NCBI GenBank assembly: GCA_964035545.1
Contig: OZ037768.1
Span: 17,095,875-17,159,874, forward strand
Source: Bugula neritina
Lineage: Eukaryota; Animalia; Bryozoa
Length of the DNA: 64,000 bases
Reading direction: 5' to 3'
Shown here in pieces: positions 5,070 to 59,990 of this stretch. Below the pieces are notes generated by a model. That model ran no database searches and had not been told where the DNA came from. It saw nothing but the letters and a program-made list of their open reading frames with translations. Position 1 is the first letter of the stretch, and each line of letters begins with the position of its first letter. A program made the position numbers and the translations under genes.

Positions 5070-5190
5070 CAAAGTCATTGTTAGTGTCATTGAATTTGAT
5101 ACTCATACTCATGACTCAACTCTAAGAGTAAGTATGATACTGATACTGATAGGAAAAGTCAAAGTGAAAGTGACTAACTCAGATTAAAAG
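5070..5190. repeat. Triplet-periodic low-complexity tract (HMCES side of promoter)
   Basis: ATACTC, ATACTG, AAAGTC and AAAGTG hexamer variants. Confidence 0.6.
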
Positions 5191-5339
5191 GTAAACAATA
5201 AAGGAAATAAAATTTAATAAATATGTCCAGAATTAAATAAACTCAAAAAGAATTGATTAGCTGATAAATCATTTTAAAAATGAATCAATCAATTATAATT
5301 TATTTAAATTAAAAATCAAAATAATTTCTTTTTTACTTT

Positions 5340-5735
5340 CCAATCCGCTTTTTCAAGTCTGAGTTTCGGTTACTGTTAGTGGGGTGAAATTGTATAGCTA
5401 TACGTGTCATTAAGTTCACTAAAACATTACAACCAGACAACAAACTTAATTCAAAATTGCTTTACAATCAAAGTTTTAATTAGCAGCAGCCCAAGTGTAA
5501 GCCACAGTATTAGTTATTAAATTTAAGGTGTAGGATTTTGACGCATTCTTTTGCAACTCTGGAGTTGGCGCGTTAAAACAATATCATACTCTCTATTCCA
5601 AAGAGTTGCAACTTGTAGCCTGATTTCCCCATTAGAGCAAATCCAAGCAACGTTGCTGCGCAACTAATGGGGAAATTGGCGTTTCCATTTGTTATAAAAG
5701 CGTCGTCTATTCAATTTTTGACTCGGCTTCTTGAA
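5340..5735. promoter_or_regulatory. Putative bidirectional promoter core HMCES/DPCD
   Basis: Lies between divergent genes and is CpG-rich relative to surrounding introns (GGCGCG, GCTGCGC, AGCGTCGTC). Contains an X-box-like GTTGCTGCGCAAC at 5652-5664. Confidence 0.6.
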
Positions 5736-5744
5736 ACTTAAAAG

Positions 5745-6135
5745 TTGAAATTGAAAGTGATGAATGATACTCATACAGTCATACTGATATACTAGTACTT
5801 TAAATTATAATAGTGGTATTGTCATTGAGCATCAGTAGTAGTGGCAATAGTAGTAGTCGAAGTAACAGACTTAGAATTTAGTAGCAGTAGTATCTATACT
5901 TATACTAATACTCATACTGATACTCATAGTCATACTGGACTAGAGCATACTCATACTGATACTCATAGTCATACTGATACTAATGGTGATACTGAATCTG
6001 ATAGTAATAATTATAATAGTAATAATATTATTAATCATGATATTAATATTAATTTGATAATGACGGCGATGCTGAATAATACTTACACTATCACTCTAGT
6101 CTCTTTTATAATGATTATTGATTACCAAGTCTAAT
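5745..6135. repeat. Triplet-periodic low-complexity tract (DPCD side)
   Basis: (ATACTC/ATACTG/ATAGTC)n, (AGT)n, (AAT)n. Confidence 0.85.
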
Positions 6136-6447
6136 GGCTAATACTATTGAAGTTACTGAATGCATGCAACTATCAATGTTTAATATTGGCAAGTCATCTT
6201 GTAAATAGACACAGAGCATATACTGTATTCTTGATATTTGGTAACCTGTTTGAAGTAGGAGTTTGAAAGTTGACTCATCTGTGCTTCTGAGATGATCTGT
6301 GTAAAATAATGTTAATTTTTATTGAATTTCACACCTGTGGTTACTGTTAACTTTCCTGCCTACCATTAGAGCAGCAGTCTGTTAAATTAGCTGGTGTCTA
6401 AATAACATTTAATACATACAAATTGTGTTTTAGTTTTGCTGATAATT

Positions 6448-7044
6448 ATGGCAACTTCCTGGCAACAAAACTTGGAAACTGCTCAAAAAACAGCACTCCT
6501 ACAGGATGGAAAAAGAAAAGTACACTATACATTTAATGATGGAAAAGAAATGGTAGAAGAATATGATGCTAAAACTAATGAGCTAGTGTTACGGAAATGG
6601 AAGGAATTGGGTGCATTTGGAAATGCTAAACCATGGCAAATTGAAGTCGGTGAAGTTTTAGGACTATCACATACCGAGAAAGAGATAGGACTGATGGAAA
6701 GCTTGAACAATCCAGTAGTTGTTAGAAGAGACAAACTGGATGCATTTCAGTGGCGAATCAGAAACTTGCCTTATCCAATAGACACTTATAATGTTACAAT
6801 AGAAGAAAAATATATAGTGGTCAGGACAAGCAACAAAAAATACTTCAAAAAGCTCAACATTCCTGATATGGATCGTCTTAACTTAGATCTAAATGCAAAT
6901 CTAGTAACCTTCACGCATGCTAATAACACTCTCATCATAACCTACAAAAAACCCAGTCAACTATTAGAGTTTGAAACAAAACTTATAGAGAAATTGAAAT
7001 CTATAAAAGCTGAAGGTGATGTAAATCAGTGTAGACAACAATAA
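6448..7044 (+). CDS. DPCD: DPCD (deleted in primary ciliary dyskinesia homolog), intronless CDS
   Basis: MATSWQQNLETAQKTALLQDGKRKVHYTF...FQWRIRNLPYP...VRTSNKKYFKK...ANNTLIITYKKP...CRQQ matches the DPCD family. A splice acceptor (TTTTAG) at ~6433 lies just upstream of the ATG. Confidence 0.93.
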   Translation: MATSWQQNLETAQKTALLQDGKRKVHYTFNDGKEMVEEYDAKTNELVLRKWKELGAFGNAKPWQIEVGEVLGLSHTEKEIGLMESLNNPVVVRRDKLDAFQWRIRNLPYPIDTYNVTIEEKYIVVRTSNKKYFKKLNIPDMDRLNLDLNANLVTFTHANNTLIITYKKPSQLLEFETKLIEKLKSIKAEGDVNQCRQQ

Positions 7045-7332
7045 ACCAATCATAAATATTTCCAATGATCATATTAGTTACATAACATAGAAAGTAAATA
7101 TATGAATATTTATTGTTGCAACATCATTAGCTTTTTACATCTGTATTTCAATAACAATACCATGAGTTCAGTTATACATTGGAAGTATTGAGCACTAAAA
7201 TACTGGAACATTGAAACAAATAGTAACATCATAAATAATTCAATAAAAAGTACTTTAGTACAATTACGTTGTAATGTAACATGCAATGATTAGTATACAC
7301 AGTGATGTCTTTTTCTCCACCTCCACAGTTTT

Positions 7333-10449: not shown

Positions 10450-11790
10450 CAAACTAGACTAGTAGTAGCACCATCAGAAGTAGTAGCAGCAGTACCAGTA
10501 GAAGTGGTAGCACCAGTACTAGTAGCACCAGTACTAGTAGTAGCAGTAATAGTAGTAGTAGCAGTAGTAATGTAGTAATAACAGTACTACTACTGCCAAT
10601 ACTACTACTAGTAGTACAGGTACTAGGGTACTATAACTACTGTTACTAAATTACTATTACAGTACTGGTACTAATAGTAATAGTTTTAAAATTATTACTA
10701 GTACTAATACAGCACTAGTACTAATGGTAATAGTAGGCCTACTACTAGTATTAACAGCAATACTACTACTAGTACTAGTAGTAGTGGTACTATCACCATC
10801 CCTATTGACTATAGTCAATAACTATCAGCATCAGTCTATCATTATGTGATTTTCACATTGTGATTGTAAATGTACCACACATACTGTTTAGCTATATCAA
10901 TGTGTCATTGAATCAATACTTTGACAGCTTTGATTATAACTATCACTATGACTATGAGTATCAGTATGAGACACTATGAGAATGAGTATTAGTTACAACT
11001 TACAGTTGGTGTTACTGTTATGTCTTACAGCTAGTGCTACGCCTACAGTATCAGTAGACAGTATGAGTATGACTATTGGATTGAGTATTGTATCACAGAC
11101 TAACAGTATGAGTATGACTATGAGTATCAGTATGATACAGTGAGTATGACTACGAGTATTTTTTGAAGTTTTACCAATACTTATACTTATAGTTATAGTT
11201 ATTCCCATACTAATAATTATACTTATACTGTCAAGTGAGCATGACACTGAGACTGAGACTCATACTGATACTGATATCAGTGTGAGTTTGAGTTATCATA
11301 ACTCAAACTCATACTGATAATATCAGTATGAGTCTCAGCCTCAGTGTCATGCTCACTTGACAGCATCACTGATACTCATAACTCAAACTGATAATAGAAG
11401 TATTAGTATTACTATTAGTATTACTATTACTATTGGTATTACTATTACATTTACTGTATTACTATTACTATTAGTCAAACTCATAATGATAATCATAATC
11501 ATAATGACTAATGAGTCATAGTCAAACTCAGTGTCATATTGATACCAAAAGTAAAAGTAAATCAGGACCTCAAACTTAAAGTTAATTATAATCATAATGA
11601 TAATGATAACCATAATCATAATCATAATGATAATCATAATCATAATGAGTAAGTACTAAGTTTACCTTAAAGTTAACAAATACTGAAATAGTAAGTTACT
11701 GATTAACTTAAAGTTAATCAGATTAGCTATTCAATTAATTACTATTATGTAGTATTTAAAATAATAATAATAATATTAATAATACATACG
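10450..11790. repeat. Triplet-periodic, palindrome-rich tract in the presumed GID8 first intron
   Basis: (AGT)n, (ACT)n, (AGTATG)n and (ATAATC)n blocks. Palindromes at 10762-10785, 11228-11363 and 11699-11721. Confidence 0.9.
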
Positions 11791-11799
11791 AATATGCTA

Positions 11800-13218: not shown

Positions 13219-16200
13219 CTACGATGCTCGAAACTTAGGAAAGCACAAACCAAACCGTGTCTCTACCCCCTCAAACGTGGGTCGGACATATTTGTAGCCT
13301 CCAATGTGGTCGGGATTTGGTGGAACAAAATCTTCAATTGAGCGCCCTGTGGTTGAGCCCTCTGGCTTTCTGTAAATTAGATGTATTAGTAAAGCATTTC
13401 TTAATTGCAGATGATCTAGTTATCTGCAATAGAGAGGGAGGAAGGGTAGAAGAGAGATTAGAGGCATGGCGCGGACATTTAGAGGACGCAGGTCTCAAGG
13501 TGAGCCGGAAGAAAACTGAGCATCTTCCACCAAGGAAAAGCACAACCAGGATCAGAATGAAAAAATATGACCAGGAAGACTACACTGAGCTACCAACAAC
13601 TAACAAGTTCAAGTATCTGGAGACAGTGATAGATCAGGATGGAGGCTGTGAGGCGGAAGTCACAAGAAGAATAAGTGCAGCATGGGATAGATGGAGAGAC
13701 CTATCAGGAGTTATGTGTGATAAAAAAGTGCCTAAACAACTGAAGGTATTACTCTACAAAACAATCATAAAACCAACACTGATATATGGCAATGAAACAT
13801 GGCCCATCACCCAGAGGCAAGAACAAAGGATAGAGGCAACCGAAATGCGAATGCTCAGACACACACAGGGAATAAACTGGGGGCTCATGTTAGGAATGAA
13901 GGCATAAGAAGCGAAGCTAAGGTTAAACCTGTGTCTAGGTATATGAGGAAGAGAAGACTTCAGTGGTATGGTCATGTGCAGAGGAGAGATAGTGAAGAGG
14001 ATATTAAATATGTGGCTGAGTTGAAAATAGTGGGGAAGAGAAAGAGAGGACGACCCAAACGAAGATGGATGGACACGATAGGAGATGACATGAAGCGATG
14101 GGATCTTAAACCAGAGGATGCAGAAGACCGGGAAAGATGGCAGACGCTGATAGAGATTGGAAACCTGCAGACCGGTCACCCGTACAGGGATACGACCGTA
14201 TAGGTGTGAAAGGTGTGAAAGTAAAGCATTTCTTAATAGTATTAGAAGATAATTCACCCCGCAGAAAGCCAGCTTTTCCCGTTAAAGATAGACTGCATTG
14301 TAAAAAAAAATCCATTGCTATTGCCAAAAGCGTGACTAATAATACATGATAAAATGTACCCTGATTCACAATCTTCAGTCAGAAATTCAATTTGGCCGAG
14401 TTGAAATTTCACTGATTTACGTTGCACTTTAAAAGCTACTTATCAATTTGTTGTACTGTGATAACTTAATCGGCAGATTTCAGAAAGATAACCAAAAGAA
14501 ATAATAACTCCTTGTAGATATCGATATTTAATTATGACTTTAGTGATTAGATGGCATAACTGAAAAGTGTTAAATAAAGCTTCATCGATTCAAGATAAAG
14601 CTAAGTTTTATGTTTATAATTATATTAGCCTACGATTTCTCAATTATCGATTTTGTGCTGCCAGCTTGACTGATTCCTTACGTTTTCAAAGGGCATCAAA
14701 TAGCGATTAAGCGAGTCTTATTTCATTATTAAAAAGTGAACTTCCCCATCAATATTATTTCAAAGATGTTCAGTAAACCTATAAACGAGTGAGATTAACT
14801 GAAACTCGGTAATTTTTTTCGCAGAGGTATAAACGCAACTTTACACATACAATAATGAGTTTAGAACTAACCTGCCACCAAAGTCGACGTAAAAGAAACG
14901 GTGAAGCATTTCGTAAGTGACGAGAGTGACTGCAAACTGTGGTGATGATCGGAACACTCGTGCTACAATGATGAACACAATGGACTTAACACATACTCAG
15001 TATCAGATGCATTATAAATATGAAGATTACATATAAACATATATTTTATAACATGCTTCGAAAAGTAACTATCTAAAAAATCATCTGTTCAAACAACACA
15101 GCTATTAGTAGACTGAACGGCCATAATCTAGTAAAAGCTTCATCTAAGCATTGCCGTGAGTCAAGATTAATGGTGCTATTGGTGAGTTGTCTCCCCCATT
15201 GTCCGAACCCCAAAAGCTAAACTAGTGAAACAGCTCACAGCTGGTCAACTGATTTGATCAAGTACTAATCCTACGATCTTACCAGGTGCTCCTTTCCAAA
15301 GAGCTCTTCCACCCTCTTCTTTCAAGATGGTCTTGAAGCAGTGGAACACTCCGTTGTATGTAGTCTGACCGGCCCGTGCTGTCACTTGCAATCTTGTCTT
15401 TATGACATCAGCAGGGGTGACCAAGGAAGCCGCAGGTGCACCTACAATTTTAAGGATAAAAAAACTCACACAAGTCTATAGTCACCAGTCCTGTGAGAAA
15501 AACTCTGATGGAAATGGGAATTTTCAAAGTAGGCGAAGGATCTATTCAGATGGGGCACAGGAGCAATTATGATTGGATGCTCTTTCTAACATCACCATAG
15601 GCCTTCGTCGGGCTCGAACCCATGACTTCGTGCTTACTAGACAAACACTCTAACCCGTAGACCACGGCTGATCCTTACAGTTTTAATGATCAAATTCATA
15701 TAAAATTACAGAGATTCAAAACTTTGGTAAACCAATGATGCACACTTCCATTTCATCATACCCACAGTTTAGTTTATGAACAATGATGACATATTTATTT
15801 GAATAAATCAAGCAATAGTATTCTTGAAAAAGTGAATAATTTACCCGCTATGAAAGCTGCTGCCAAAAGAGTCAGCGGTGTATTGTACCCATTTTCATCA
15901 GCGAATTTCTTCTTAAGGTGAGCATAAGTAGGGAAGTATATTGCCGAAAATGGAATGTCCCTGAGAAAGCAGGCCCTTGCTCCCTAGAAAAATATTATAA
16001 AATTAACGCCATAGTTACATTTTAAATATATCCAATGAAGTACACCACTATTATTTACACAACTAAGAATTACTTAATTCAACCTCAAGATGTATAATTT
16101 CATATTGTGTTAGGAAAGAAAACAAAGAAACAGAAAGTACTTTATAAAGCCCAAAGAAGCCAAGCTCCTTGATCACTTGAATAGCACTGGGTCGGGCCGC

Positions 16201-22939: not shown

Positions 22940-23695
22940 TATTATTACTCAATCTTATACTTTTAATCTATATACTTATAGTATAGTTATACCTATACGT
23001 ATTAATTATTAGTTATTTACTCTTAATTTTGCAGTTACAGTATCAGTAAGTGAGTATGAGTAGTTTAATTTAAAATTAACATTTATTTAATAAATATTAA
23101 TTGTAATTATAAATTAATGTTTACTCATATTTACTTCTATTATTGAAACGTTAAAAAAATTTAACATTTTGATAATTATAATGATAATCATTTTTATAAA
23201 TCAGTAATCATCTAAAGATAATGATAATCATAATAATCACATAATTATAATCTTACTTAATCTTATACTGATAAAAATAGACAATAGTCATACTCATAAT
23301 CACCATCAAGTATCAACTTGAACTTCAAGTATCATAATCAATATTATTGAATAATATTAATAATATCATTATCGTAGTGAGACGATTTTAAGTTCAACAA
23401 TCAGTATCACGCACAATCACTATCAGTATCAACTATCATTGTGATTGTAGGTGTATGACTATGAGTATGACTATGAGTATGAGCATCCGTACGACTATGA
23501 GTATGAGTATCACTATCAGTATGACTCAGTATGAGTATCATTTAGTTATAGTAATAGAAATTTAAATCTAATTCTTATAGTTATTCTAACACTGTTAGTA
23601 ACACTAACAGTAACACTAAGTGACTAACTTACTGTAATTGTAAGTGTAAGTCATTGTCAAAGTGAAAGTGTAACTAATAAGTAAATTCAAGCTAT
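22940..23695. repeat. Triplet-periodic tract (SLC25A12 side of promoter)
   Basis: (ATAATC)n, (AGTATG/ACTATG)n, (ACTAAC)n, (AAGTGT)n. Confidence 0.85.
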
Positions 23696-23699
23696 AGCA

Positions 23700-24090
23700 T
23701 GTGGCTGTAAATGTTGTACAATTATTATTTATCCAATCTTGTCACTCAAAGGTATGTAATTGCAGATAATTTTAGAGAGGCTTATGCTTAAACTTGAAGT
23801 TTTTTGCCACCTGTACTGCCAAAGCTGCAAATCCTGCATCTAATTATGACTTTGCACGACATGCCGGCCACCGTCATATTCCAACCATATAGAGACAGTG
23901 TGCATGAGAGATCAGTGGAGAACGTGTAACCCTCCTTTGCGAGTAATGAGCTGTAAAGAATTTGACAGTTTACAGTATTTAGCTTAGAAAAGACCGATGC
24001 AGGTAGACATGTTTCAGTAGACTAACAATCGGCTGTGTAAAATCTACGCCCATTAGTTCTCCACAAAAATGCCTGTGATGGCGGGTAAGT
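23700..24090. promoter_or_regulatory. Putative bidirectional promoter core SLC25A12/HAT1, including HAT1 first coding exon
   Basis: CpG-retaining island that ends in ATGGCGG|GTAAGT (24078-24084), which splices in frame to the HAT1 exon at 27012. Confidence 0.7.
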
Positions 24091-27000
24091 TTATTTTTAT
24101 GAAATAGTTATAATATGTATAAAATATATTTATTTTATTACTACAATTTAAAAGAAAATATTGTTGTTTAGTCAATAAAATATTTCTTGTTTACTACTAG
24201 TACTATTAGTGTAAGTAAAATTTATGTTTTCAGCTTTTTTATTATTTATTTATTGTTTCTACTTCTAGACCTAGTAGTAGTAGTAGCAGTAGTAGTAGTA
24301 CGAATAGTACTAGTACTAGTAATAGTAGTAGTACTAGTAATAGTAGTAGTAGTAGTAGTAGTAGCACTTGTAACTTACTCTTACTTTTAGCCTGACTTTT
24401 AGTAGTAACACTAACTATTACTTTTACTATTGCCATTGCATTGGTGTAACTGTAAGTATAGCTATAAGTTATACTGTATAAGTATTGCATTTAATTTTAA
24501 TATACTAAACTTAAAGTTATAGTGATAGTCTATAGTTATAGTATAACTATAAGTATTTATTTATAAGTATAAGTATAACTAGTATAAGTATCTGTATTAC
24601 CATTACATTAGTATTGGTATTGTTCAAAGGTACTGTCGGTGTCACTTATTTTTGAATACCTTTGAAATTTGAAGATATCGCACCCTTAGCACTCGGGAAC
24701 ACTCAAGGTTATACTTATAGTTATAGTCTATAGAACTAGAAGTACCTCATTTATTTTACAGTTATGAGTTAAACTTTTAGTGTTCTACTTATTCATGTTA
24801 TGAAAATGGTGGAATTTTAATTTATATCAAATGGAAATTTAAAGGAAAGTTGTTAAAATTATAATAATTATAATAGTTATATTATTAATAATCACAATGA
24901 TAATGAGTATGTGAAATTTAAATGGAATATAAATATTGATTTACATTATCTACTTCTAGATGAAAAAAAATTCATGTAAGTTCATAGTAATACTAATACT
25001 AATGGTAATAGTATCAATCGTTATCCCTGTGAGTGTGGGAGCCCCTGAGGCTGACGGAAAGGATTTTACGGTAAAGCGGCTAAGAAATTGTTTCTAGTGT
25101 GGCACAGGACTCAGAAGCATTCATGGATGAACTAGGATGCTCTTCCTAAAATTCCCGCCAGTGTTTGGTGTTAACTAGGCCAGCATTCTAAATACTACTT
25201 GGTGTTTTTAGTTCTAAATAATGAATATTTATGCACCTAGATTTAACTCGCCTCCTAACTCCCTCCACCCTTCCCGGCTTGCTAGAGTTTTAAGCTGTAA
25301 CTCAGTGGCGAACATCGCTGATGCCAAATTTCTATTTGAGGTTAGCAATAAATCGGATGGCTTGGTTTGGACAGGTTCAATTTCCTCACACTTGCTTTTG
25401 TGAGTTGATTCTCACAATGTGTATGCATGTTCAAGATCAGGCCTACATATACTTGAGTATGCAATTTATGTTGCTTTCGTGGGAGCTTGTAGATTGTATA
25501 CATGTTTAATACAACTAAGTACTTAGCTCGGGTTGTTGACTTTAAATGTAGTATGTTTGTTAAATTTCAGATTAGATTGCATGAATGCAGTTACACCAAA
25601 GTATTTGGTCTCTTTGACTGCTTTGAGAGTGTATATATATAGATGGAATGTATGATTGGTTTTCCCAAATATGATAACTTTTTACGTGTCAGTGATAAAT
25701 AGCATTTTTCTTTAAGTGACCAGCTATAAAGTGAGCCTAGGTCTCGCTGAAGAGCTTGTCTTTTATTTCATTGTCAACCTTGGCATATATGAGTGTATCA
25801 TCTGCGTATAGACTCACTTTCAGTGTAACAGATTGGGAAGATCTTTAATGTAGAGAAAAGTGTTGGCTGTTTGTTGAGGACTCCAAATGTTGCACTTATT
25901 TCAGACTATCCTGTCCCTCTAATCCCGACTCAGTATAAGTTTAACACTGCAATTGTTCAATCATCAGTTACTTTTAAATTGAATAAAATTTACCCATATC
26001 TTCTCTCATATAATTGCAGTATTTGCTATGCTGATTTGTGAATTAAATGTACATGCAATTATGCTAAATTATATTGCAATCTTAATTGAAATCATAACCA
26101 ATAACATCATTTTTTTAAATTGAATTTGATAATGATCACACTCACTAAGTCTAACTCGCAGTGTCAATGTAGTTTTAGAATAACAATAATAATCAGTTAA
26201 ATCTATTTATTAAGTTGGTGTATTTTTTATGATACAACTCTCGCATGAGTCACTGTAAAATTTATTTTAGTATTGGTTTGTACAATATGATTTAATTAAT
26301 GTTATTAGAAGACACAAAGAGTGAATGTAGAACATCTGAATGGGCCTAGGGATCTAGGGATCATTTATTTTTAAAAATACATTTTGCATTTTGGAGGACA
26401 CTTTTGCATGACCATGACTAATTTTTTTTTAAATCTTTTAAATTATTGTATTTATGATCAACAAATCTCAAATTATTTACTGATATAAAAACCACCTAGG
26501 TGAGAAGTTCTGAAGTGACCACATCTGTAATCTATTTACTTGAAACAACATTGCACAATATTCCTAATACTTATAATGCTAGACAAATGGACAAGTAACA
26601 TTTTTGGTTTAATTTGATAATAATGAAATTACAGGTGCTATTGAATCAAATAGTTTTAGTGATCTTCCCAACTAAACTTATACTAAGCAATGTCACTAAC
26701 CATTAGAAATCGATGAAAAATTAGGGTTGTATGCTCTTTATTATTTTTTTGAAAAATACATTTGGCAATATGTTTTGAATATGAAAATTTTTAAATGTTT
26801 CTGCTGAACGAGATCGTTCATATTTATAGCTAGTTTCTATTAACATTCCTTTTATGTTTCAATATCACTACATTTCTCTATGATGTACCAGAGTTACAAT
26901 TCAAAGTCATATTTTTAAATCACTATTGCAGTTTCATTTTATAAGCCACTTGTGAATTCATTGTGGCATGTGCCCACGAGGTGTCATTAGTTTGCTCTAA

Positions 27001-42081: not shown

Positions 42082-42479
42082 GATGACAATGTCAGGGTGA
42101 TTACAAGCTCCAAAGTAGCAAATCAAAATAGCAGCTACAGGCAGGTTAGCAGCAACACTAAGTTGATCTTTAATGTTGGGTGATTACCAGTTGCTCATAG
42201 TTGAAAATTCAGTAAAAACTGTAGGTAACAGTAATAGGGAGTTGTCACATACTAGTGATCAGGTAAAAATCAGCAATAGCTGGAGCAAGACTCATCACAA
42301 GCTAATGATGAGCATAGGTAAATCTATAAGCTTAAGCTAGCTTCATTTCACAATCAATTCCTCCAACTCTTACACTCATAGCTATAGTGATTATAAGAGT
42401 AACTTGAAAAAATTTCCTAATTTCAATTCAGATTAGCCACAACTGTAACTGTAGCCAGTAACTGTAAGGGCTCAGCCAA

Positions 42480-43260
42480 TAAAAGTGATGGTGATTGATA
42501 CAGTATTAGCATAACTATAAACTAGAGGCAGAGTTGACACTGGATCTGTCAGTTTGAATCATACTTTCATAGTGATGGTGACCCAGAATAACCTAAACTG
42601 AAAGTGACCAGACAGTGCAGGGTGTCGGTGAGCATGAGCATAATTTAAACTAGCTACTAGTACTATACTTACTAGTAACTGCATCTAATTTTTCTGAGTA
42701 ATTTACTAACATTCGTAATTTAAATTAATAATATTTTAATCATTTTAGTTAATAATATCATAATGAATGATAATGATTTATCATAATGAAAGTTGTCATC
42801 ATGATCATTGTGATAGTCTGAGTCAAACTCTAAGTTGCTGATGTTATGCTAAAAGTATTTATTTTAAAAGTCACCTAAACGGAAAAGTGGAAAATATATC
42901 CATTCTGATTTTAAACTATAAGTCAAATTGATTCTAAGCTAAACTACAACTTGAAGTTGATGATGATCGTCCGAGTCTGGTGACATGCTCATGGACTTCA
43001 CTCATGGCGTTGGACTTTCATTTTGAAATAGACTTTTGAGTTTAAGACTGAGTGTAAATGTAATACTAATATCAAAACTAAATGTAATACTTATACTTAT
43101 AGTTAAGTTATACTGTACTAATTTATAATTACTAATTACTAATTTAGTAATTAGTAATTGAAATTCAGTAACAACTAAAAGTAAAAGTAAACGGGAAACT
43201 AATAGGAAACCTAATAGAAAATGATGAACTACTGCTACTTACAAATATGTTAAGACCCTT
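42480..43260. repeat. Triplet-periodic tract (KANSL1 side of promoter)
   Basis: ACT/AGT/AAT/GAT blocks, (ACTTAT)n, (AAAAGT)n. Confidence 0.7.
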
Positions 43261-43269
43261 AATTAGTAC

Positions 43270-43750
43270 AAAGTGCTGAATATTTGAAACCATTATCATC
43301 GCATTCTCATTTTGGTGAAAACTACCACATATCAATATGAATATGCGACTACAGCGTGCATCTTTATCCAAAATTTTGCTTATGCAGATGTCGGTCGTTG
43401 ATGGTCACGCGGTTTGCGTTATGCTCTGTGAAACAGGATTTGTCTTTCCAATGTAACGTACGTATCTTGTTTATTGAGGGATGATCAAATTATCACTGCT
43501 GCTAACCCCTCTCGGTATAAATTGAATTTAGCCAATAATGTTCAATACTTTCTAAATACAGTAAAATAATATAACTAAAACGCGCCTTTCGCAAAACCAT
43601 CGAGTTGTCCTTTCCTACTTATTAGCGTTAAGCAAGGTTTTTGTAGTATGAGCGTGGTATTATGTGTCAACTTGTGGTAGGTGCAGTATAATGGAGAGAT
43701 TCATTAAAACATTGTGTTTCAGAGAGAAAATATAGCAAACTAAGTTGTAT
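43270..43750. promoter_or_regulatory. Putative bidirectional promoter core KANSL1/SUGP1
   Basis: CpG-rich island (GTCGGTCG, CACGCGG, AACGTACG, AACGCGCC) between divergent genes and flanked by tracts. Confidence 0.6.
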
Positions 43751-43954
43751 TTTATTCAAGAGTTCAAATTGCCCAAATCAAAAATTACAAATTTATAAAA
43801 TTCTGATTTTTCATTTAGCCTTACTGCTCCTACAACAATAATAATATTATAATGATCATCTATGGAGTTGTGTCACCTTGGAAAATAGAGTCCAAAATTG
43901 CAAATTTGAGATCGAACTGAAAGTGAAAAATGTTGATTGAAAAACTGCAGAACA

Positions 43955-45200
43955 CTAGTTAGTAGTTACTTACACAGTAGCAGTTTGTAATAATAATAGA
44001 CGCCGCCATCATGACTGTTGTCATGATGGGAACAAGGATACATATACTGGACTCTAATACTTTAAAACTTAGTTAAAATTAAAGCTTTCCAACGACATAC
44101 TGATAGTGATACTGATACTCATACTGAGTGACATCTGAGACTGATGCGACACTCTAAGTCTAACAGTAACAGTGATACTCACATTGAGTTTGACTGAGAC
44201 TGACTCAGACTGTCACTGTGAGTGTCTGACACTCATTCTGATAGTGAGTGTGACTGAGAATCAGAATTTTCCAGTTCGAGTATCAGATTTTGGAGTAAAC
44301 TGAGAGCAAGAGTTCTGATTCTGTATCATTCTGATTCTCTGTGATTGTGAGACTGAGTGAGTCTGATATTGATTATGATTGTCGTAGTCATATTAGTACT
44401 CGAACCTAGTCACTGGTACACGATAGTAATACTTATTCTGATACTGATAGTGACTGTGAAGTGTGATGTAACAATGGAGGTAAAACTAAAACTAAATCAG
44501 TAAAACTAAATGCAGTGCTCAAAGTCAATAACATTAGCTGAATAAGAAATTGAATCAATGACAATCGCTATTTAGTATTCATATTCAGTTAATGTTATTC
44601 TATTAAAAAAAAATGGTTTTGTTCATGTTTGAGCCTGAATCCATTTGAATTTGAATTTCATGGACTCGACTGAGATTGACAATTGACTCACAATGACAAT
44701 TCTCATTCCCCTTGACAATCATAGTCAATAGGAAGAACAATTTTCATTGTAAGTCAGACTCAGTCAAGTTCATAAAATTCAAATTCACATTGACACCGGA
44801 TCAATCAATCATAAACAAATAGTAGCAGTAGTGTTTTTTTATAAATGCAGCTAGGCCTTTTTGGTTAATTATACTTGTTGGTGTTATTATAACAGTACTA
44901 GTGTTGCTACAACTATTAGTATTACTATTACTATATAGTAAATTGACCTCCACATTGCCCATGGCCGCTGTGATTATGATTGAGCTTCAAACAATGATAA
45001 AGGTATTAAAACTGAAAGTTAGTGTTGCAGGATACTCCTAAAAAATAGTTGGAACTGTTATTATAATTAACATAAAGTTAAGGACTAGATCATTGGTCAT
45101 TGTGATTTCAGTTTTTTACCATTCATTACATCAGTCATGGGCTAGTTGCATTAGTTATTAGTTATTGCCATTAGTTTTACTATTACTAATTATTATTTAT
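43955..45200. repeat. Triplet-periodic tract (SUGP1 side)
   Basis: (ATACTG)n, (GACTGA)n, (ATTCTG)n, (TGACAA)n. Hairpin CCATCATGAC-TGTT-GTCATGATGG at 44006-44029. Confidence 0.8.
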
Positions 45201-45980
45201 CAGTTAGACTTTACAATGATTTGACACTTCAAAGCATTTGTTATGCACAAGAACGCCGTAAAAAGCTTATTTTAGTGTAGGTAATAGTATTTGAATTGAT
45301 AAACTTATATATAACTACTCTTCCAGATTTGGCATGTAGTTAAATGGTCTATGTAAGCTGATTGCCCCTAAGTATTTGTGGTTGAGGTAAGCATATGTTC
45401 ATTGGTCGTCAAGAATTCCAACTGAGTTATATACAAAAATTTAGTGTTAGCATATGTAAATATTTCCTTGGATTTCATTCTAAGCTTTTCTATATACAAT
45501 ATAATTTTTTAGGATGGTGCATTTCACTCCGAAAATCTTTTAAATCTCTTTTGTATAATAGGGTCATAAAATTTCAAAGTTGTAGGATCAAAAACTCTAT
45601 TTTACATAACTGTATGCGACAAATCCTAACCATAACGATAGTAAATGAATTCTTCTGTATACTTTGCTTTAGACCAAGTTTAAAGTAATGTATACTGTTA
45701 CTTTATTTAAAAAATCATTGTCTGATCAAGGTTTTTGTTTCAAGTTCATAAAATATCAAGTGTTGTACTCAACATATCTAATGGAATTTGTTTATTTGAG
45801 CAGTGATGAGGTGTCGTTGCGCCAACGTTTATAAAAGTCAATTGTAGTTGAAGCTATCTGACAGTGAACCCAGTGTTTTTAAATATACTGAAAATATTTT
45901 GTTTATACACATAAGTTTTCTTTCTCACGTTATGTTTTTATATCCTAGGGTATATACTTCTACCATAGAATCAAGATACA

Positions 45981-48900
45981 ATGGCATTTCAAAACAGGTA
46001 AGTCGCCATTTTATAATAGATTAATATGCACAAGAGAACAACACAAACCAGCTCCTAAAAATTAAAAAATTTTCATTTGTACATCTGCATTAATATCGAT
46101 AGTTGGTGGCAAATCGATAGAATTTGGAGAATTAATCAGACTTTTCTTCAAGTTTATAGTCATTTATATTTAATAGTAATTGTTGATATTTTACCGAATT
46201 TATGATGTATTAACACATAATTCACCTATTTACTATGGTAAATGAAAATTGCTATACCCAATACTTGTATCTAGCAAGTATTGGATGTTGGTGTACTTGA
46301 ATCAAAAATGAAAGCAATCAACGATCAATCTTGGTGGTGGCATGTCCTTCAAATTGTTCACAAATCTGCTGTTTTTACATATGTATGTTGATCACCGTCT
46401 TGGTTTTAGCTGGTTTTTAACTTGGCTTTTAATTACATTTTAGTGCTAATAATCCTCCTTCCATAGAATTGAGAAATGATGGATCTTTTCTTGAGCAGTT
46501 TAAACGAATGCAACAAGCACAGCTGAGCTCAAGTAAAGGTTTGTACTCATTGTAACTCTTCCAGCGCCATCATATGGAAAAAATATACTTTTTTGCATTG
46601 CAGTGCTCCCTCCGTATCTCGCTAAGCTATAGATCTCAAGTAGAATGCCAGATTCAACTTACAGATCCGTTAAATTTGGCCATTTGGTCCCGATATACAC
46701 AAATGTATATACACATATGCTATTAAATAACCTCCGACCATCTGATCTAAACTTGTCCATTTATACATCATTGCAGTACTATCAAAGCAACACATCTCAC
46801 ACCCATTGGTTATGCAAGAGATAGCTTCTCCAATAATGGCGTCGTTGTTTCCTCAAAATTTGAAATTGACATGAAAAATTTTTATGCCCAAACTTTCAGT
46901 GGTATTTCCAAGACAGCACATAGAAGTCCTCGTTTTTAAATATTGAGTTCTCAATGCAGCAAATTATTTGTATAGTAATAAAATTCACCAGCTGCTGTCT
47001 TTGTAGATGTGCAAAAGCCAAATCCACCTCCCTCCAGCTCAGCTGCAGCTGTAGCATCATACTCACAGCAAATTCTCCCTGGAACTATAAAAAATGATGG
47101 ATCTTTTCTGGAGAAATTCAAAAATGTGCAGAAGCAATCACAAACTTCACGTAAGTAAACTTGTGGAAGTGGTTATTGTTAGTTACAAGTATTCAACTAG
47201 CCACTTCTCTTGTTTAACTTCTCAACTAACAAGTTTCATTTCTGTTTACAGAACATATAAAACAAGAAGTGAAAGAGAAGCCTAATTTAAAAGTCGCACA
47301 GCAGTAAGTTTTAGCCCATCTCTACATTTTAAGTTTGAAGGAAGAATTCAATGATGTTGCTTTGTTTTAAACAGACCATCTGATACTTATCTTTTCTCAT
47401 GAACAGTAGATTTCCTGTTACCGCTGTTTTGCTGGCTACAGTTTTTTTTCCATAGGAAGCACTTGCAAATACTGTATTTTCTAGAATTAGTCGAGGAAAT
47501 ATTTTTGGCTGATTATTGATGGTAATTGTATTTCGTTAGCTCTTTTAATCCAGAATAAACTTTCAGTTTGTGTATCCATTCAGTTTGGATGTAGCATGAT
47601 ACTTTTACCTGCAACCATTGCAAACTCAGTTATTCCATTCATTATAATGTATGTATAAAACATATCGGTGTAACCATGTTGTTCACTGACATACTGCAGG
47701 TTAGCATTCAGATCTCGTTTTCTCACAGCTCCCAAAAAAGAAAAACCAACAGCTAAAATTACGGATGTGTTTGACTTGGATTATGATCGTAAGTATTTCT
47801 TGCCAGTCGGTATTCATGCTGTTCCTACTTAGTTTAAATTAATTTCTAGTATTTATCAGATTTTACTGCTCTGCAAAACTTTAAGATCAATTCTATAGTA
47901 ACTGCCTCCATGGCCATAATTGAGTGATGAATGCACAGCCCGTTGGGTAGGTGATTTAAGGCTATACTGACGTAGGCGTTGATAGTTTCCTTAACAGAGG
48001 AAGAGCAAGCGTTTATTGAGCAAATCGCTGAGCAAGTTATTGATGGTGGCCTCGCTGAAGAGAAAAATCTGAAAGCTCAAAGTTCATATGATGAAAGACT
48101 TCGGTGAGTGAGCCAGATAATCTGTAGCTGTAGGCACGGGCTTAGATCTGCTAGTTCAGCAGGTTTGTATCTCGTTGGTGGCGTTCAGGTGAGTAATCGA
48201 ACGGATATTTGTGCAGCCGAAACTCTCTTGTAGTACCGATATGTATTTCACAATCAAAACACAGATTTTTGTGTAGTTTCCAAGGAACTTTGAGAGCCAG
48301 CTAGATTTCATTGGTAGCTAATGTAGCTGTTGATATAATAGTTGTTGCCTTGCACTATCTAATAAAAATATTTGAATACAGTTGTAGTCTGTTTACCAAA
48401 TGAATATTCCTTACTCTTTCATAAGAGAAGTTTAATGATGCTGTTGTGTAGATTTCTTCGGCAGCCAAACACAGAATCTGGCAAATACTATGTGAGATTA
48501 TTGAAAAGGAAACGGGCAAAACTTGCAGAAATAGAGAAGTTGAAGCTGGAAGCTCAGGAACAAGCGGAGCGTGAACGTTTAGCCCAAGAGAAGCTAAAAC
48601 GAGAGAAAGATGAAGAGGCTGATGGAGAAAGTGATGACGGCTCAAATACAGGTTCATCAAAACGTGTGAGTATTTTATTTATGTGTGACAATAAATGGAG
48701 TCTGTTTGCTTATTGCCATCCGGGAGCAGCCGTGGTCTAGGGGTTAAAGCGTTGGCTTTGTGAACACGAAGTCGTGGGTTCGAACCCCGACAAAGGCCAT
48801 TGGTGGTGTTGTGAAGAGCATCCAGTGATAATTGCTCCTTCTCCTCATTTGAACAAGTCCTTAGCCCGTTCTAACAAAAGCCCTTTCCATCAGGGGTTTC

Positions 48901-51900
48901 TCACAGGGATAGCGACTATAAACTTGTGTGAGTTTGCTTATTGCCATCATTCTTTAGAACTATGTAATAGCGGAACTATATGATTACTGTGATGTATTGA
49001 TATTCATTGCATCAATTTATGTATTGTATCAACCACAGCACTAGTGTACAATCATGAAGCACACATAGTAAATTATGGAGTACAATTTATTGATCAGAAG
49101 GATTGTGGGACATGATGACCTGATGTATAGCCTCAAGTAAAGTTTTGTCTTCTAGTTGTCAAAGAAAAGACACGCTGACACTTCATTTGTGACACGACCA
49201 ATTGACCAGGCAGCAGAATTGAAAGCTTTTCAAGAGAAAATACGTCAGCAAACGGCACAGATAGCAGCTACTGTTAAGAAGAAGAGTCGTTTCAGTGATG
49301 CTCCTGCTGCCGCTGCCGCACCTCCAGCAGGTATAATGGCATTTCAATAAAATAAATATGAACTTCTTTTATGCTAAGGGTCAAAGTTCACCTGCAGAAA
49401 ATTGATCTATTTACATATATATAAATCTGATGCGGTTGCATAATAAATTTAATGGCCAATTGCAGTGGTTGGTATGACACAGTTGTCAACAGAAGCAATG
49501 CTTGCTAAGCAAGTGACTGGTGGGGAATTGTCTGCAGAGCAGAAGAAACAGCTGGAGTATCAGCGACAGGTTTGCACTCTAATTTAAGCTTCAAAGACAC
49601 TAAAGACAGAAATTTTGTTTACTGCACTACACAAACCCCTTTTTATTTGAGAATGTTTCTGTTTTCCTCATATACTCAATCACTAATGACTACCTCAATT
49701 TCATAATTAGAACAATATATTCTTGCTTTGCCGTGTAGTATTCAAGTGATCAATTTTTTAAATTGGACTAAATTGATTGTTATTTTCATTTATCAATCGT
49801 ATGTAGTGTATCTCTTGCAACACTTTCTTGAAATGAGCTTTGCTTAGTGAACTACAGTTCAAATGTTTAATAGTCACAGCTTTAGCTTTTGGTGCGTGCT
49901 ATGTTTAACTTTAAATAAATAGTTGTGTATCGTCATTGAGTGTTGAAATCTCTCTCTCTCTTATAATTTAATAACTTCATGTATTTTTTAGATGAACGAA
50001 ATGTATGAAATGATAACAAAAAAGCAGAAAGCTCAGCAAGATGCAGAAAAGGCACTGACCATGGGCCGACCCAGCAAAGGGATGTATGCCTACGATTCTG
50101 ATGAAGAAACAGAAGGTAATGTGGTGAAACATCGCTCAACAGATTTACCCCATCATGTATATATTTTATCATTTCAATTCAAGCTTTTGACATGTTACCC
50201 TGGTGATAGAGCAATGGTATGCAAAGTCCCATTACAACGTGTAGCTGATAGTTCTGACTGGAGTATATTCCTTGGAACTAAAATGATGAAGCCCTTCAGC
50301 AAATTTAACAGCTTCTATACTATTCTTAATTTACAGAAAATTCAAAGCCAATTCATAGTTCCTGTAAAGAACTGGTAATCTCAATATCAGATGACTCGCT
50401 AGATTTTATATTTAAAGCAATATCCTTGTAAATAACATTAAAAAATGTCCAATTTGTAATGAAGAAAAAAATGATTTAAAAATGTATGTAGTTTAATTGC
50501 AATTTAAGGAGGTACTTGGGAACATAAACTTAGAAAAAGAGAAATGGCCGCCACCAGAGATTGGGCGGATGAGTTGACTCGGCAGAATAGAGGGAAACAT
50601 CACATGGGCGATTTCCTGCCTCCCGATGAACTCAAAAAGTTTATGGAAACTTATCAGGTGTGTGCACGGTTGATGAAAGAGCAAGGGCTCTAGCAGCTAG
50701 GATAGTGTTGCTGTCTGATTTTTAGTGAAATGAGACTAAAAATGTTGTAATTGATAACCCCAAAAGGAAAATAAATAAGATGAAAACAGTACTCTTCACA
50801 CGATTGTTGAAACAATTTTTTATCTAGATATGTACAAATTCTATTAGCCCATCAGTCTGTATATTCTGCATTGCTATTCGTAGGCACTTAAAGAAGGCAG
50901 GGAGCCAGATCTCTCTGATTACAAAGATTTCAAAATTACTTGTGAGAATATCGGATATAAGATGCTAATGAACATGGGTTGGGAAGAAGGTACTGGTTTA
51001 GGATCCCAGCAACAGGGAATTACAGCTCCTGTGAACAAGTATGTTTCATATTTACTGGTCACCTGCATGCTTGTGGAGATTCATATTTTACCTGGCAAAT
51101 TTCAGACAAATTAGATAAGTTCCACAATTTTAGGTTGCCCACTTTCAATTACAATTCACCAAGAAATTGACAGTAGTTTTGTATTGCGTCAAAAAAAATA
51201 ACTAAAGGCACCAGAGTTAAAGCAATGCATGTAGCATCATTAATTTTCTAAAAGCAGCCGAGTTGGGGGTGACTGAGTGCAGTGCTTTAAGGTTCTTGAG
51301 TTTGGAGTTGGGATTCAAAGTTCCACCCTAAACACCAACTCTAAACTTGAGAATCCCAGACCAATAGTCACCCCCCCCCCCCCCCCCTCTCACTCTAAAC
51401 TGATTACAGACAAATTTTAGCATTATTAGCCTCACAATATTTTAAGAATTTTTTGCTGGCTTCAATAGATCAGCTCATTATTCAATAGCAATCTAAATTG
51501 TTCTCAGAAAGGACATTAGTTCACTTACAGGTCATTGATTACAGACTTTTGCATTACATACATATGCATTATGCACAAGTCATAACTCATCGCGAAACTA
51601 GAACACATTATCTTGTATCAACACAGCTTCATTCATAAATATTATGATGGAATCATTTGTCCCTTCTATTGTAAAGGTGTGGGCCATGCTACTTTGCTTT
51701 TTTGCTGATGAGAGGACAAATCCTAAATTAGTGACTGGCCATCCATTGAGTCTATTATATTATTCATAAGTAAATAGGAGATTTTTACGAGTTGTATATT
51801 GGATTAGCTATCTTATACTATTTTCCATTAACTTTACAGAGGTCAAACCAGTTTAGATGGAGCTGGTATCGGTGTAGAAAAGCCACATAACTTAACTGCT

Positions 51901-52172: not shown

Positions 52173-52291
52173 GTCAGCTGACCTCATCTGCACAGGGAAC
52201 CATGTACTATCGATATAATTTGCCCATACAATGTTCTTTATTTGGATCAATAATGTGTATACATCAGTATATAGTATAAATAAAATTTCAA

Positions 52292-55560: not shown

Positions 55561-55799
55561 GGCCAAAAAGCTTCTAAAAGTTATACTGCTAGAATCCAGG
55601 AAATAAAAGGACCGGATGACATCACCACACAAAATTCTAGAAAATAAACTCTGCAATAATATTCTATTTTCTAGTTATGAAAAGACCATTAGCAACCAAT
55701 TTCCTGTCATATCCACTGTAACATGCAGTTTTAAGTAAAGCACAATTTAACTTTGCAATAACCAAGTATTCCATCAACACAGACCCAGAGGGATTACAG

Positions 55800-56275
55800 A
55801 GACTGAAAAAGAATAATAAAAATAATAATATAACTACAAAATACTCAAAGTGATAAATATGGATATCAATATGCAATATAAATATAAGCATAACTGTAAT
55901 ATTAATATTACAATATTTAAAATTATGATTATGATATTGGACTTGGTTTTCATTGTCATTATTATTATAATTATCATTATCATTATGATAATGGTAGTCT
56001 AGGTCACTTTCAGTTTCATAGTGAAACTAAATGCGATACTCAGATAATGATGATTACTATTAATAATTAATAAAATAAGTATTATAATAATAATTAGTAC
56101 CACTATCAGTATCACTATTAATAAAACTTTAAAAGTAATATTTCTAATGGTAATACTAATATCACTTTTAATATGAATACTCATGTCTCATAGTCATACA
56201 ATTACATAGTGATACTGATAGTACATACTGAGTTACTCACGAGTCAGTTTCACTTACAATTATTTTATTTTTAAC
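55800..56275. repeat. Triplet-periodic tract upstream of the MRPL24 coding exons
   Basis: (ATT/AAT/ATC/ACT)n blocks. 18-bp palindrome TGTAATATTAATATTACA at 55895-55912. Confidence 0.8.
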
Positions 56276-56300
56276 TTTTTGGTTTCCGTTTAACGGTTTA

Positions 56301-56983
56301 CCCCCTATTCACACTTACCGTACCGTACGCCGTAACAGCAGATTTTAGCGAGTTTTGTTAACAGCCGGGCCAAATCGTACTCCGGTATACGTTGCGGCGT
56401 TGATCAAGCAGTGCTTGATTCAAAAAATCACGGCAGGCTCCTATTGGGTAGAGTTGATCTGGTACTAAAATTTAAAGAACATTTTCTCTAGTTTATTTTA
56501 ATCGCTTATTTTTGATTTAATTTAATCAATTCAACAGTTTTAAAAGATTAAAAAATCTTTATCCGGCTTGTTTGAATTAAACTCAGCTTAAAAATCTAGC
56601 TTTCCCTAATCACAAAATCAAGCAAACAAAAAACTTAAAAATGATTTGGACGGCTTAAATATTCATTATTTAAATTAGTTTGCACAATTATTTTAAAAAC
56701 GAATATATTTAAAAGAACGATTCTTTTTATGTAATTGCTTTTATTTAGTAAATAGCATTTATATAACATTTTTTGATAGGAATGTTGCGAATAATTTGTA
56801 AATAATATTCAAAGGCGTTCAAATCACCGCAGACGCGAGTTGGCTTTATTATGATTGGTCACAGCTCACCGTCATGCATTGTACTTTTACGGCAATGTGT
56901 GAACACCCGTTGACAAAATGCAACAGCGTCGCCATTTTATTTTTGCTGTTCCGGCGTACGATACGGTAAGTGTGAATGAGGGG
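56301..56983. mobile_element. MITE with ~40-bp TIRs and TTA target duplication (PIF/Harbinger-like)
   Basis: Left CCCCCTATTCACACTTACCGTACCGTACGCCGTAACAGCA (56301-56340). Right end reverse complement CCCCTCATTCACACTTACCGTATCGTACGCCGGAACAGCA (56944-56983). TTA at 56298-56300 and 56984-56986. Confidence 0.88.
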
Positions 56984-56987
56984 TTAA

Positions 56988-58210
56988 TTGTATATTAAAA
57001 TGGTTCTGCACCATTTAGGTATACAATTGGAAAATGTGATACATGAAAACCAACATGGTTTTCGCCGCAACCTTTCATGTGTTACTCAGCTTGCTACTGT
57101 CAACCACGATATATCAAGGCATATAGATAAAAGACAATTTGCAGATGCAGTCGTGCTGGACTTTTCTAAAGCCTTTGATGTAATTGACCATCACATTCAT
57201 GTAAACAAATTATTGAAAAATAACAATAGATCCCTGTGTTATTGGATGGGTATCATCATTCTTAATGGGACGCTCACAACTAGTGGTCATTGATAGGGTA
57301 TCTTCGGATTTAGCACCAGTGACTTCTGGGGTTCCACAAGGAAGTGTGCTGGACTCAACATTATTCGTTTTGTTTAATAATGACATTGTAAACTGCTTTA
57401 CACACAGTACAGTGTTTATCTGCCCATTAATGATCTTAATGATCATCACTTTCTAGATCTTATAGGTAGGCAAAAGAAAACAATATGAAGTTTAACTCAA
57501 GGAAAAGTAATAGCATCACTTTTGAAAATATAGAAAATGTTTTTACTGATAAATTAGGAGATGATCTCCTGAATAGAGTTGGAATAGTAAAATATCTTGG
57601 AATATTGTTATCAGTAGATTTGAGTGGAATTAGCATATCAAAAATGTAATCTCGGAGGCATACAAAGTGATAGGACTAATCAAGTTCACACTAGAACTGC
57701 CCCAAAAAATGTTAAAATTCTCGCATATAAAACTCTGTGTAGACCTCTCCTGGAATATGCTGCGGAGGTATGGGACATGTGCAATAAGAATCTGATTACA
57801 AAATTAGAAGGTACTCGAAATAGGGCTGTACGGTTCATCAAAAATTTAAAGGGTAGAGAAGTATCAGTAACAGATACCAAATTTGAGTCAAGCCTAGAAA
57901 CCTTAAGAAAGCGTAGACAGTCACGGAGAATTTCTTTGTTGTGCCGTATTACTGCTAATGAAGATTTATTTCCAGCCCTAAATAACACTTGTCAATCAAT
58001 GAAATCCTCCACCCATAACATGAATACCCGTATTAACGCATTCAATGCTTTGCCTGCGATTCCAGTCTGTTCCTGCAGGGTTTCCTGTTGCGCACTGTCC
58101 AGGAGCTTCGTACGGGGGGGGGGGAGAAAAGATAGTGGAGATAGATCTGAAGGTCCCACAATCACTCTCTCCGAGAGGTCTTGGGACTTGATCCAATCAA
58201 AATCAAGGTT
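56988..58210 (+). mobile_element. Frameshifted CR1/L2-type LINE ORF2 3' part
   Basis: NQHGFRRNLSCVTQL, LDFSKAFD, SGVPQGSVL, KYLGI, AYKTLCRPLLEYAAEVWD, RAVRFI. Confidence 0.9.
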
Positions 58211-58760
58211 TAATTACTACTACTACTAGTAGTAGTAGTACTTTAGTTTTGCTAGTACTAGTACGACTACCCGTTTTAATCACAACTATTACTATTAGTA
58301 TTAGTATTAATAATTAATTATAATACTATTAACTATTGAGTATTATAATTATAATAATTACTAATATTTATATTATTTAAAAAAATTAATATAAACTTAA
58401 AGATATTATTAAATTCAATAATAAAAATTTATTTATACTTACAATTTATTATTCTTCTATTTGATTTTAACAATAATGATAATCATAATGAAAATGCCAA
58501 TTTGAATTGGCAATTGCATTGCCATTTAATGTTTATTTTAAAGCGATTCTCATTCCCATTCACTGAATCAGCCATTTCTCTTTCAGTTTTTTTTTAGATA
58601 CGGGCACATCTTCACAATAACAGTAACTAAGTCCAAGACTAACAGTACAGTAACTGTAAGTGTAACTTTAAGTTTAAGTCTAGAGTGTAAACTGTAAAGT
58701 GAATTAGTGAATTACTTTCACTTTGACTTTCATAAGTAATTAACTTTAAGTTTCACTTTT
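58211..58760. repeat. Triplet-periodic tract left of the LARP7 promoter core
   Basis: Perfect 26-bp palindrome TACTACTACTACT-AGTAGTAGTAGTA (58215-58240), (ATT)n, (AAAGTG/ACTTTC)n. Confidence 0.8.
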
Positions 58761-58764
58761 CAGC

Positions 58765-59160
58765 CTTCAGAACAAGATAAGTCATTAGTTTTATGGCTAG
58801 TGGCGAACGCAACTATTATTATTTAGCTCAAGTTATAGAAACCAGAAATACCAATAACATTAAATTTCAATTAAATAATTTCAAACCTGTATCAAAAAAA
58901 TTTATTATAATATAATTTTTGTGCAAAGCACGTTATTATTTGATAATCATCCATTCAATCTCAAGCTATTAAAAGTTAGCCTATCAACTTCAAGTAAAGT
59001 TACTTTTCGCCATGCGCTCGTTAAAAGTGAGCCCAAGAGACAATAAACTAATACTGTGTGCGGTATAACACACTGGTGAACCATCGTTATATTCAAATTC
59101 ATGTTTTAAAATGTAAGATCAGAGGCTGTATTGAGATATCGCGGGTATTAGTATTTTTTC
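58765..59160. promoter_or_regulatory. Putative promoter core for LARP7 (possibly bidirectional)
   Basis: CpG-retaining island (GGCGAACGC, TCGCCATGCGCTCG, ATCGCGGG) flanked on both sides by tracts. Confidence 0.5.
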
Positions 59161-59189
59161 AATAAAACATTGGTATTAAAAATAAATTA

Positions 59190-59990
59190 ATGGTTACTAT
59201 CACTATGATGATCATTATGATTAATATAATTTAGGTTATTACCATAATGATAATGATAATTATTATAAGTACTATCATCATAATCCTAATAATAGCTGTA
59301 GCATATGATAATATGCCGTAATATGACATATTATTATATTTATTATCATTATGATTATGTGTAACTGTATACTGATACTCATACTCATACACTGATAGTG
59401 ATACAGTCATAGTGATAGTCATAGTGATACTCATACTGTATCAGTATCAGTATGCAGTCAATAGTATTACTATTGTCTATTAGTGTATTACATTTAGTGA
59501 TTTACTATTACTATTAGTATTACTATTAATATTAGTATTACTATTAGTCTTGCTATTACTATTAGTATTACTATTAGTATTAGTATAACTGTTACTATTA
59601 GTATTACTGTATTAGTATATCATTTTCATATTGATATTGAGTTAAAGTGAGTGTGGTACTGGTAAGGATACTAATATTAACACTAATACGTAATAGAATA
59701 ATACTAATACTAGTACTAGTAGTGGAACTTGAAGTTAATGTTGTCATTTACTTTTAGCCGGTAGTTTAGTGTGAAGAAAAATCCGACAGGTGTCAAGTTC
59801 AACAGTTAATGACGCTTCCTGTTCATGTTAGACTAAAACGTAGCATCAGTATGAGTATAGTAGTAGTTAATTAGTTATACTATAAAGTTAAATATTCTTA
59901 TTGATATCAGTAATAAATAAATCATAAATAATCCTAATACTAATAGTTGAATGTGACTCAGACTGAGACTGCGTAGGTCTCTAATATGAT
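59190..59990. repeat. Triplet-periodic tract (LARP7 side)
   Basis: (ATACTC)n, (ATAGTC/ATAGTG)n, (TATTAG/TATTAC)n. Confidence 0.85.

Follow-up and report, generated by a model that had tools for sequence, protein, structure and literature searches.

Gene starts and periodic tracts in the window

This study concerns a window of 64,000 nucleotides from the bryozoan Bugula neritina (the whole stretch of contig OZ037768.1 between positions 17,095,875 and 17,159,874, assembly GCA_964035545.1) and a set of periodic, non-coding sequence tracts that lie at the 5' ends of its genes. The B. neritina assembly comprises 216 Mb in 9 chromosomes, with 20,264 genes (PMC11480708). The window genes were verified exon by exon, and the identities of HMCES, GID8, a mitochondrial carrier, HAT1 and an RRM gene are backed by Pfam. 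The single-exon gene at 6448-7044 is DPCD and shows 99% identity to Bugula neritina. KANSL1-like, SURP/G-patch-like and MRPL24-like are names that we assume for other genes of the window, and the RRM gene is presumably LARP7-like. Gene starts were placed from first donors, CpG cores and skew flips rather than from RNA-mapped transcription start sites. The features are collected in Table 1.

A sequence-only reading of the window had claimed a periodic tract at every gene start. Periodic sequence was indeed recovered at all ten tract ranges, although the tract on the HMCES side is short and weak. A sliding periodicity score peaked at each of the ten ranges and elsewhere only at an 18-bp minisatellite, and no tracts were found in 20 block-shuffled control windows. 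All 69 window matches to four A[C/G]T triplets at six-base spacing fall within tracts, while 131 of the 136 matches to three such triplets lie no more than 1.8 kb from a putative promoter core, a zone that makes up 31% of the window. A fourth-order model trained on other loci only found the window tracts and nothing else of any size. There was no match to an Rfam structured RNA within the window. Short-read contigs, probably from the source sample, are identical to 42100-46596 save for one 3-base gap, and this part is therefore not an assembly artefact. These DNA contigs have no heterozygous site across the 4.5 kb of 42100-46596 and many in 46597-47536. The two ranges beside the MRPL24-like gene are most simply read as one tract that was split by a miniature inverted-repeat transposable element (MITE) and an insertion resembling a long interspersed nuclear element (LINE).

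The CpG-richer cores that had been proposed between paired tracts stood for the four divergent gene pairs, with a CpG observed-to-expected ratio (o/e) of 0.57-1.10. The start of GID8 is without a clear CpG core (o/e 0.44), and the CpG-rich sequence at 56.3-57.0 kb proved to be the MITE. As described before, the GID8 tract lies on the transcribed side, and the tract of HAT1 begins shortly (~105 bp, as against ~100 bp claimed) past its first donor. The reported absence of tracts from downstream introns held within the window, but plain ACT microsatellites or minisatellites were met in late introns at 2 of 18 other loci.

Table 1. Tracts, putative promoter cores and other features of the window (window positions; UTR, untranslated region)
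Feature	Position	Strand	Remarks
HMCES-side tract	5070-5190	-	Short, weak
DPCD tract	5745-6135	+	In presumed 5' UTR intron
GID8 tract	10450-11790	-	Transcribed side of start
Fold-back in GID8 tract	11228-11361		Arms ~65 bp; z -12.4; missing from other B. neritina lineage
aralar/SLC25A12-like-side tract	22940-23695	-	
HAT1 intron 1 tract	24190-25015	+	
KANSL1-like-side tract	42480-43260	-	Degenerate
SURP/G-patch-like-gene-side tract	43955-45200	+	Degenerate
MRPL24-like tract, distal half	55800-56275	-	
MRPL24-like tract, proximal half	58211-58760	-	
RRM gene (LARP7-like)-side tract	59190-59990	+	
HMCES/DPCD shared core	5200-5740		Putative; CpG o/e 0.91
aralar/HAT1 core with HAT1 first exon	23700-24090		Putative; CpG o/e 0.57; HAT1 donor 24085
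KANSL1-like/SURP/G-patch-like core	43265-43650		Putative; CpG o/e 0.93 over 43265-43950; strongly conserved between lineages
MRPL24-like/RRM (LARP7-like) shared core	~58765-59185		Putative; CpG o/e 1.10
HMCES start codon	3974	-	HMCES tract on 5' side of gene
DPCD	coding 6448-7044	+	Single coding exon; acceptor 6433; 5' UTR intron presumed
LINE reverse-transcriptase fragment	13257-14200		Between GID8 start and aralar end; weak RVT_1 match; missing from other lineage
18-bp minisatellite	35736-35920		KANSL1-like intron; ~10 copies, faithful unlike tracts
Young MITE	56298-56985		~40-bp terminal inverted repeats; not a promoter core
LINE-like reverse-transcriptase fragment	56990-58150	+	Inserted in MRPL24-like tract
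Dispersed 130-220 bp repeat	1974-2096, 4151-4360, 15462-15639, 30227-30390, 48723-48936		Five window copies, 70-85% identity

Six-base grammar and its turnover

The period of three bases that had been described proved incorrect. Autocorrelation of the tracts revealed a main period of six, with an identity of 0.51 at lag 6 against 0.36 at lag 3 and a background of 0.29; maxima occur at 6, 12 and 18, and lag 10 gives 0.29. What stays constant is an A-N-T, usually ACT or AGT, which recurs once per six bases and is strand-symmetric (826 AGT and 797 ACT on the sense strand). CC and GG are depleted, five-base A/T runs are half as frequent as in the background, and the tracts are CpG-poor (o/e 0.35). 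Exact tandem duplicates of length 6 are in 21-fold excess (169 against 8 expected), and those of lengths 4 and 5 are below expectation. An A-N-T is present in 98% of the duplicated hexamers, compared with 57% in the background.

The units are not copied alike at all positions. Between adjacent units the centre C/G is identical in 48% of cases and the other three bases in 68-78%. Where the flanks of the centre are complementary (A_T or T_A), it is swapped for its complement in 40-57% of cases for C/G and 14-26% for A/T, compared with 5-9% where they are not, whereas genuine minisatellites from these sequences copy their units faithfully and have no centre swaps. This swap rule, together with the lack of a sense-strand preference, points to a double-strand process that handles ACT and AGT as a single site. 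Palindromes, a further element of the earlier description, are 3-6 times as frequent as in the background. Their excess mostly follows from the tract grammar, or 8-mer content: short-loop palindromes are accounted for by an order-7 model, and at long arms the rise in mirror repeats equals that in palindromes.

Tracts were found at the same places in a second B. neritina lineage, which shows ~8% intron divergence from the first. Substitutions between the two are no slower in tracts (10.1%) than in introns (7.8%), and indels are more frequent (19.5 against 9.4 per kb). Multiples of six bases account for 16 of 37 indels in tracts and 18 of 103 in introns (p=0.003). C/G exchange affects 4.4% of sites in tracts and 1.1% in introns, with the other classes of change near background. 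CpG decay was recorded at 14 of 29 sites in tracts, 4 of 40 in cores and 36% in gene bodies; on these small numbers, the tracts seem to be methylated like gene bodies and to lie outside an unmethylated core.

Occurrence in the genome and in other bryozoans

The four-triplet motif occurs 106,234 times genome-wide, against ~775 expected. Assuming seven matches each, this corresponds to roughly 15,000 tracts, a figure on the upper side in that plain ACT microsatellites are counted too. Among 20 small-GTPase (Ras-family) genes outside the window, picked by domain position alone, 12 have a clear tract at the 5' end, four a weak one and four none. The clear tracts precede the first coding exons and often form pairs about a CpG-rich core at a flip of T/A skew. 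Two of the weak class, Rab1 and a Rab19/43-like gene, carry a degenerate tract directly after the first donor. As for the loci without tracts, one has an internal domain, one a start that seemingly lies farther upstream, and two have unrelated minisatellites. A Rac/Cdc42 gene has a tract confined to its transcribed side, from about +550 to +1850, but an element resembling a long terminal repeat lies upstream. The link to gene 5' ends thus holds in this set, whereas the coupling to transcription starts that had been proposed follows from gene structure only; placed in this way, the tracts appear to sit just inside the starts of most housekeeping genes.

The two loci with unrelated minisatellites are L012 and L015, whose repeats were not counted as tracts. 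That of L012 (7390-7990) has a 57-bp unit rich in ACT/AGT and short palindromes, and is possibly an amplified piece of a tract. A YY1-type motif used genome-wide as a proxy for the start gave 10 versus 8 loci, which is about chance, in part because the motif is present in the MITE. A search for the combined pattern of start codon, donor and tract returned one match, and the sole match in a metagenome scan was the locus that had supplied the pattern, which gives no independent support.

Distant bryozoans share the gene orders HMCES/DPCD/GID8 and KANSL1/HAT1 (loci L007, L008, L035, L038 and L042). At orthologous starts in Watersipora and three other bryozoan species, no tracts were found, and ACT/AGT shows at most a faint rise (o/e 1.24 against 0.98). 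In a fifth bryozoan, whose DPCD is 59% identical and whose KANSL1 exon is ~33% identical, tracts flank the syntenic KANSL1 promoter and are the top two matches of a model trained on Bugula only; weaker tracts, with bounds set by eye, occur at DPCD. The ACT/AGT o/e is 3.07 against 1.06 in this species and the swap rule is also present. Its tracts find their best matches in non-orthologous Bugula tracts. Judged from these alignments, the grammar is common to the two bryozoans and the sequence is not. Conserved position with sequence turnover had been predicted, and was seen at the KANSL1 promoter. The further proposal of a common grammar rather than one transposon was likewise borne out, the best matches from tract to tract being short runs of simple repeat (74-86%). 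The DPCD tree left the bryozoan lineages unresolved and did not separate ancestral from convergent tracts. That two distant bryozoans have tracts while others lack them amounts to a natural comparative experiment for finding the responsible gene.

Possible origins of the tracts

Two options had been put forward, a selected element and a localised mutational process. The evidence leans to the latter because substitution is not lowered, indels in multiples of six are doubled, C and G are swapped by rule, a fold-back is lineage-specific and neither strand is favoured, although selection may still act on whether a tract is present. The tracts gain and lose six-base units anchored on A-N-T, undergo complement swaps, contain fold-backs, are symmetric between strands and accumulate substitutions at a neutral-like rate. 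We give an even chance to the interpretation that they are the scar of a germline process of duplication plus micro-inversion at the 5' edge of gene-body methylation. Such a process would operate at the DNA level, symmetrically on both strands. Its target would be the initial 0.1-2 kb of non-coding transcribed DNA in genes of broad expression, immediately beyond the unmethylated promoter core. Local copying might alternate between slippage on one strand and brief template switches to the opposite strand, with A-N-T dyads as priming sites, while promoter-proximal chromatin is repaired or replicated. Candidate triggers are repair at the boundary of methylation and breaks close to promoters. Exons and cores would be kept clear by selection, while tracts would be tolerated and may gain a secondary use.

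Several observations weigh against a mutational scar. To our knowledge, no enzyme yields six-base units under such a swap rule, and pure inversion predicts equal A/T and C/G centre flips, which is not observed. There is no excess of six-base duplications more than 300 bp from tracts, so that a general duplication bias was not seen. The excess of C/G exchange comes largely from clusters of possibly misaligned units, and among isolated C/G changes the difference (6/75 against 21/585) is not significant (p=0.11). The A and T anchors differ between lineages by 3.2%, compared with 5.7% for the same triplets in introns; this fits selection, although the choice of sites biases the comparison. A grammar kept for so long is also expected if a binding protein enforces the sequence.

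The last two points belong to a possible explanation, to which we lend more limited credence, namely that the tracts are a selected, dispersed chromatin signal in which a lineage-specific protein reads an A-[C/G]-T dyad every six bases in either orientation. It could set the boundary between unmethylated promoter and methylated body, or mark housekeeping genes as self in the manner of CpG islands or of the Periodic An/Tn Clusters (PATCs) of Caenorhabditis elegans. Slippage would then provide turnover while selection holds position and grammar, and such a signal can coexist with the mutational process. Position and grammar are kept in a distant bryozoan without unique alignable sequence, tracts are near-universal at housekeeping 5' ends, their anchors are somewhat conserved between lineages, they lie where CpG decay passes from low to high, and an orientation-free dyad accounts for the free choice of C or G. 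Mere tolerance of C/G cannot, however, give a four-fold C/G exchange or randomised neighbouring copies, and the overall substitution rate is not reduced. Moreover, living lineages have tracts that are interrupted by MITE or LINE insertions or partly deleted, the tract of Rab1 is merely degenerate, and in Watersipora and three further bryozoans the orthologous promoters function with no tracts. A speculative and rather unlikely extension is that some bryozoans have a dedicated protein system which recognises the promoter-proximal A-N-T dyad and both writes (by six-base duplication and centre flip) and reads the islands, as a self-renewing invertebrate counterpart of the CpG island and a methylation-boundary mark of thousands of genes.

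Cryptic simplicity, in which ACT, AAT and ATC microsatellites expand by slippage, decay, mix and persist in first introns under different constraint or repair, is improbable and largely refuted by the swap rule. Cryptic simplicity and compound microsatellites consist of interleaved short motifs that turn over by slippage. Pure ACT microsatellites are present in the genome, late introns included, and indels in multiples of the period are what slippage gives; the unit-multiple length change is indeed common to these repeats and the tracts. Faithful copying of units is not, for slippage copies the centre base, as real minisatellites do, yet in tracts it is random between neighbours. Duplicates of length 3 are without excess (133 against 122 expected), and neither the tight placement at gene starts nor the common grammar in a distant bryozoan is explained, a fixed A-N-T anchor, a complement swap rule and a tie to gene starts being foreign to cryptic simplicity.

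It is very doubtful that a promoter-seeking transposon family left the tracts as remains or footprints, whether as a microsatellite-seeding element or as one leaving six-base target duplications on repeated insertion and excision: young elements do insert in tracts and footprints would take the form of short duplications, direct and inverted, but thousands of events per gene would be required, a base-centred dyad does not suit an even-length target duplication, and the tracts have no common unique sequence, ends or motif order, such as the MITE does (more than 40 full-length copies at 94-97% identity, some tandem, CpG o/e 1.57). Equally hard to credit is an RNA-level signal in the nascent transcript (motifs like those of U1 or the branch point, hairpins or pausing), which would suit the transcribed-side tracts of GID8 and Rac/Cdc42 and the likeness of the units to splice-site and branch-point hexamers, as U1, branch-point and stop-codon motifs show no sense/antisense bias over 28-30 oriented tracts.

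No known repeat or promoter element explains the tracts. Each system that they resemble (PATCs, plant 5' microsatellites, intron-mediated enhancement and template switching) differs from them in a defining property where this could be tested. PATCs are A/T runs in a ~10-bp phase spread through genes, whereas the Bugula tracts have a period of six, are depleted in A/T runs and are confined to 5' ends. Both are pervasive, periodic non-coding DNA of introns recognised by grammar rather than sequence, and PATC-rich introns guard against germline silencing (PMC7725773). The plant 5' microsatellites (CT/GA, CTT/GAA) are enriched near gene starts, as are the Bugula tracts with respect to start codons and putative cores. 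They are pure di- or trinucleotide purine-pyrimidine repeats with a strand bias, while the Bugula tracts are drifting, strand-symmetric patchworks of hexamers with a randomised centre base. PMC1781443 (citing Fujimori 2003) places the plant enrichment in 5' non-coding DNA near the start. The words of intron-mediated enhancement are dispersed, without periodicity or rapid turnover by duplication. They form a k-mer signature of first introns in broadly expressed genes. Enhancement by promoter-proximal introns is treated in PMC12055998, and in yeast promoters, according to PMC13100816, polymerase template switching makes and extends inverted repeats. The fold-back in the GID8 tract resembles such an event, but those of yeast are sporadic and single, with no six-base unit and no kilobase periodic islands on most genes. 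Like CpG islands, the tracts are compositional islands at housekeeping starts in a methylated genome; unlike them, they are CpG-poor, adjoin a CpG-retaining core and seem methylated by their CpG decay. No description of such tracts was found in the open-access literature, and the feature goes unmentioned in both B. neritina genome papers.

If the tracts are mutational, they represent genome-scale, position-specific generation of sequence outside the catalogued repeat and mutation signatures, and the scar would map germline-active starts directly from DNA. If they are selected, an animal whose gene bodies are methylated has a new type of promoter island, which opens the setting of methylation boundaries in invertebrates to direct test.

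With regard to inserted elements, we take the open reading frame pieces at 56990-58150 to be LINE-like, and they have no Pfam match. The HMCES and DPCD tracts of the other B. neritina lineage have LINE-like insertions at their edges (L001 3987-6584 and 7597-9707; L002 2160-3420), and elements seem to land often in or next to tracts. Four MutS_V loci were found on the chromosomes (C1, C3, C5 and C9) where five are usual; the fifth might be absent or have escaped detection, and is possibly MSH3, which acts in the repair of larger loops. Ras-family matches on small contigs (e.g. C66, C101 and C110) read through TAA and TAG, which suggests the presence of ciliate contigs in the assembly.

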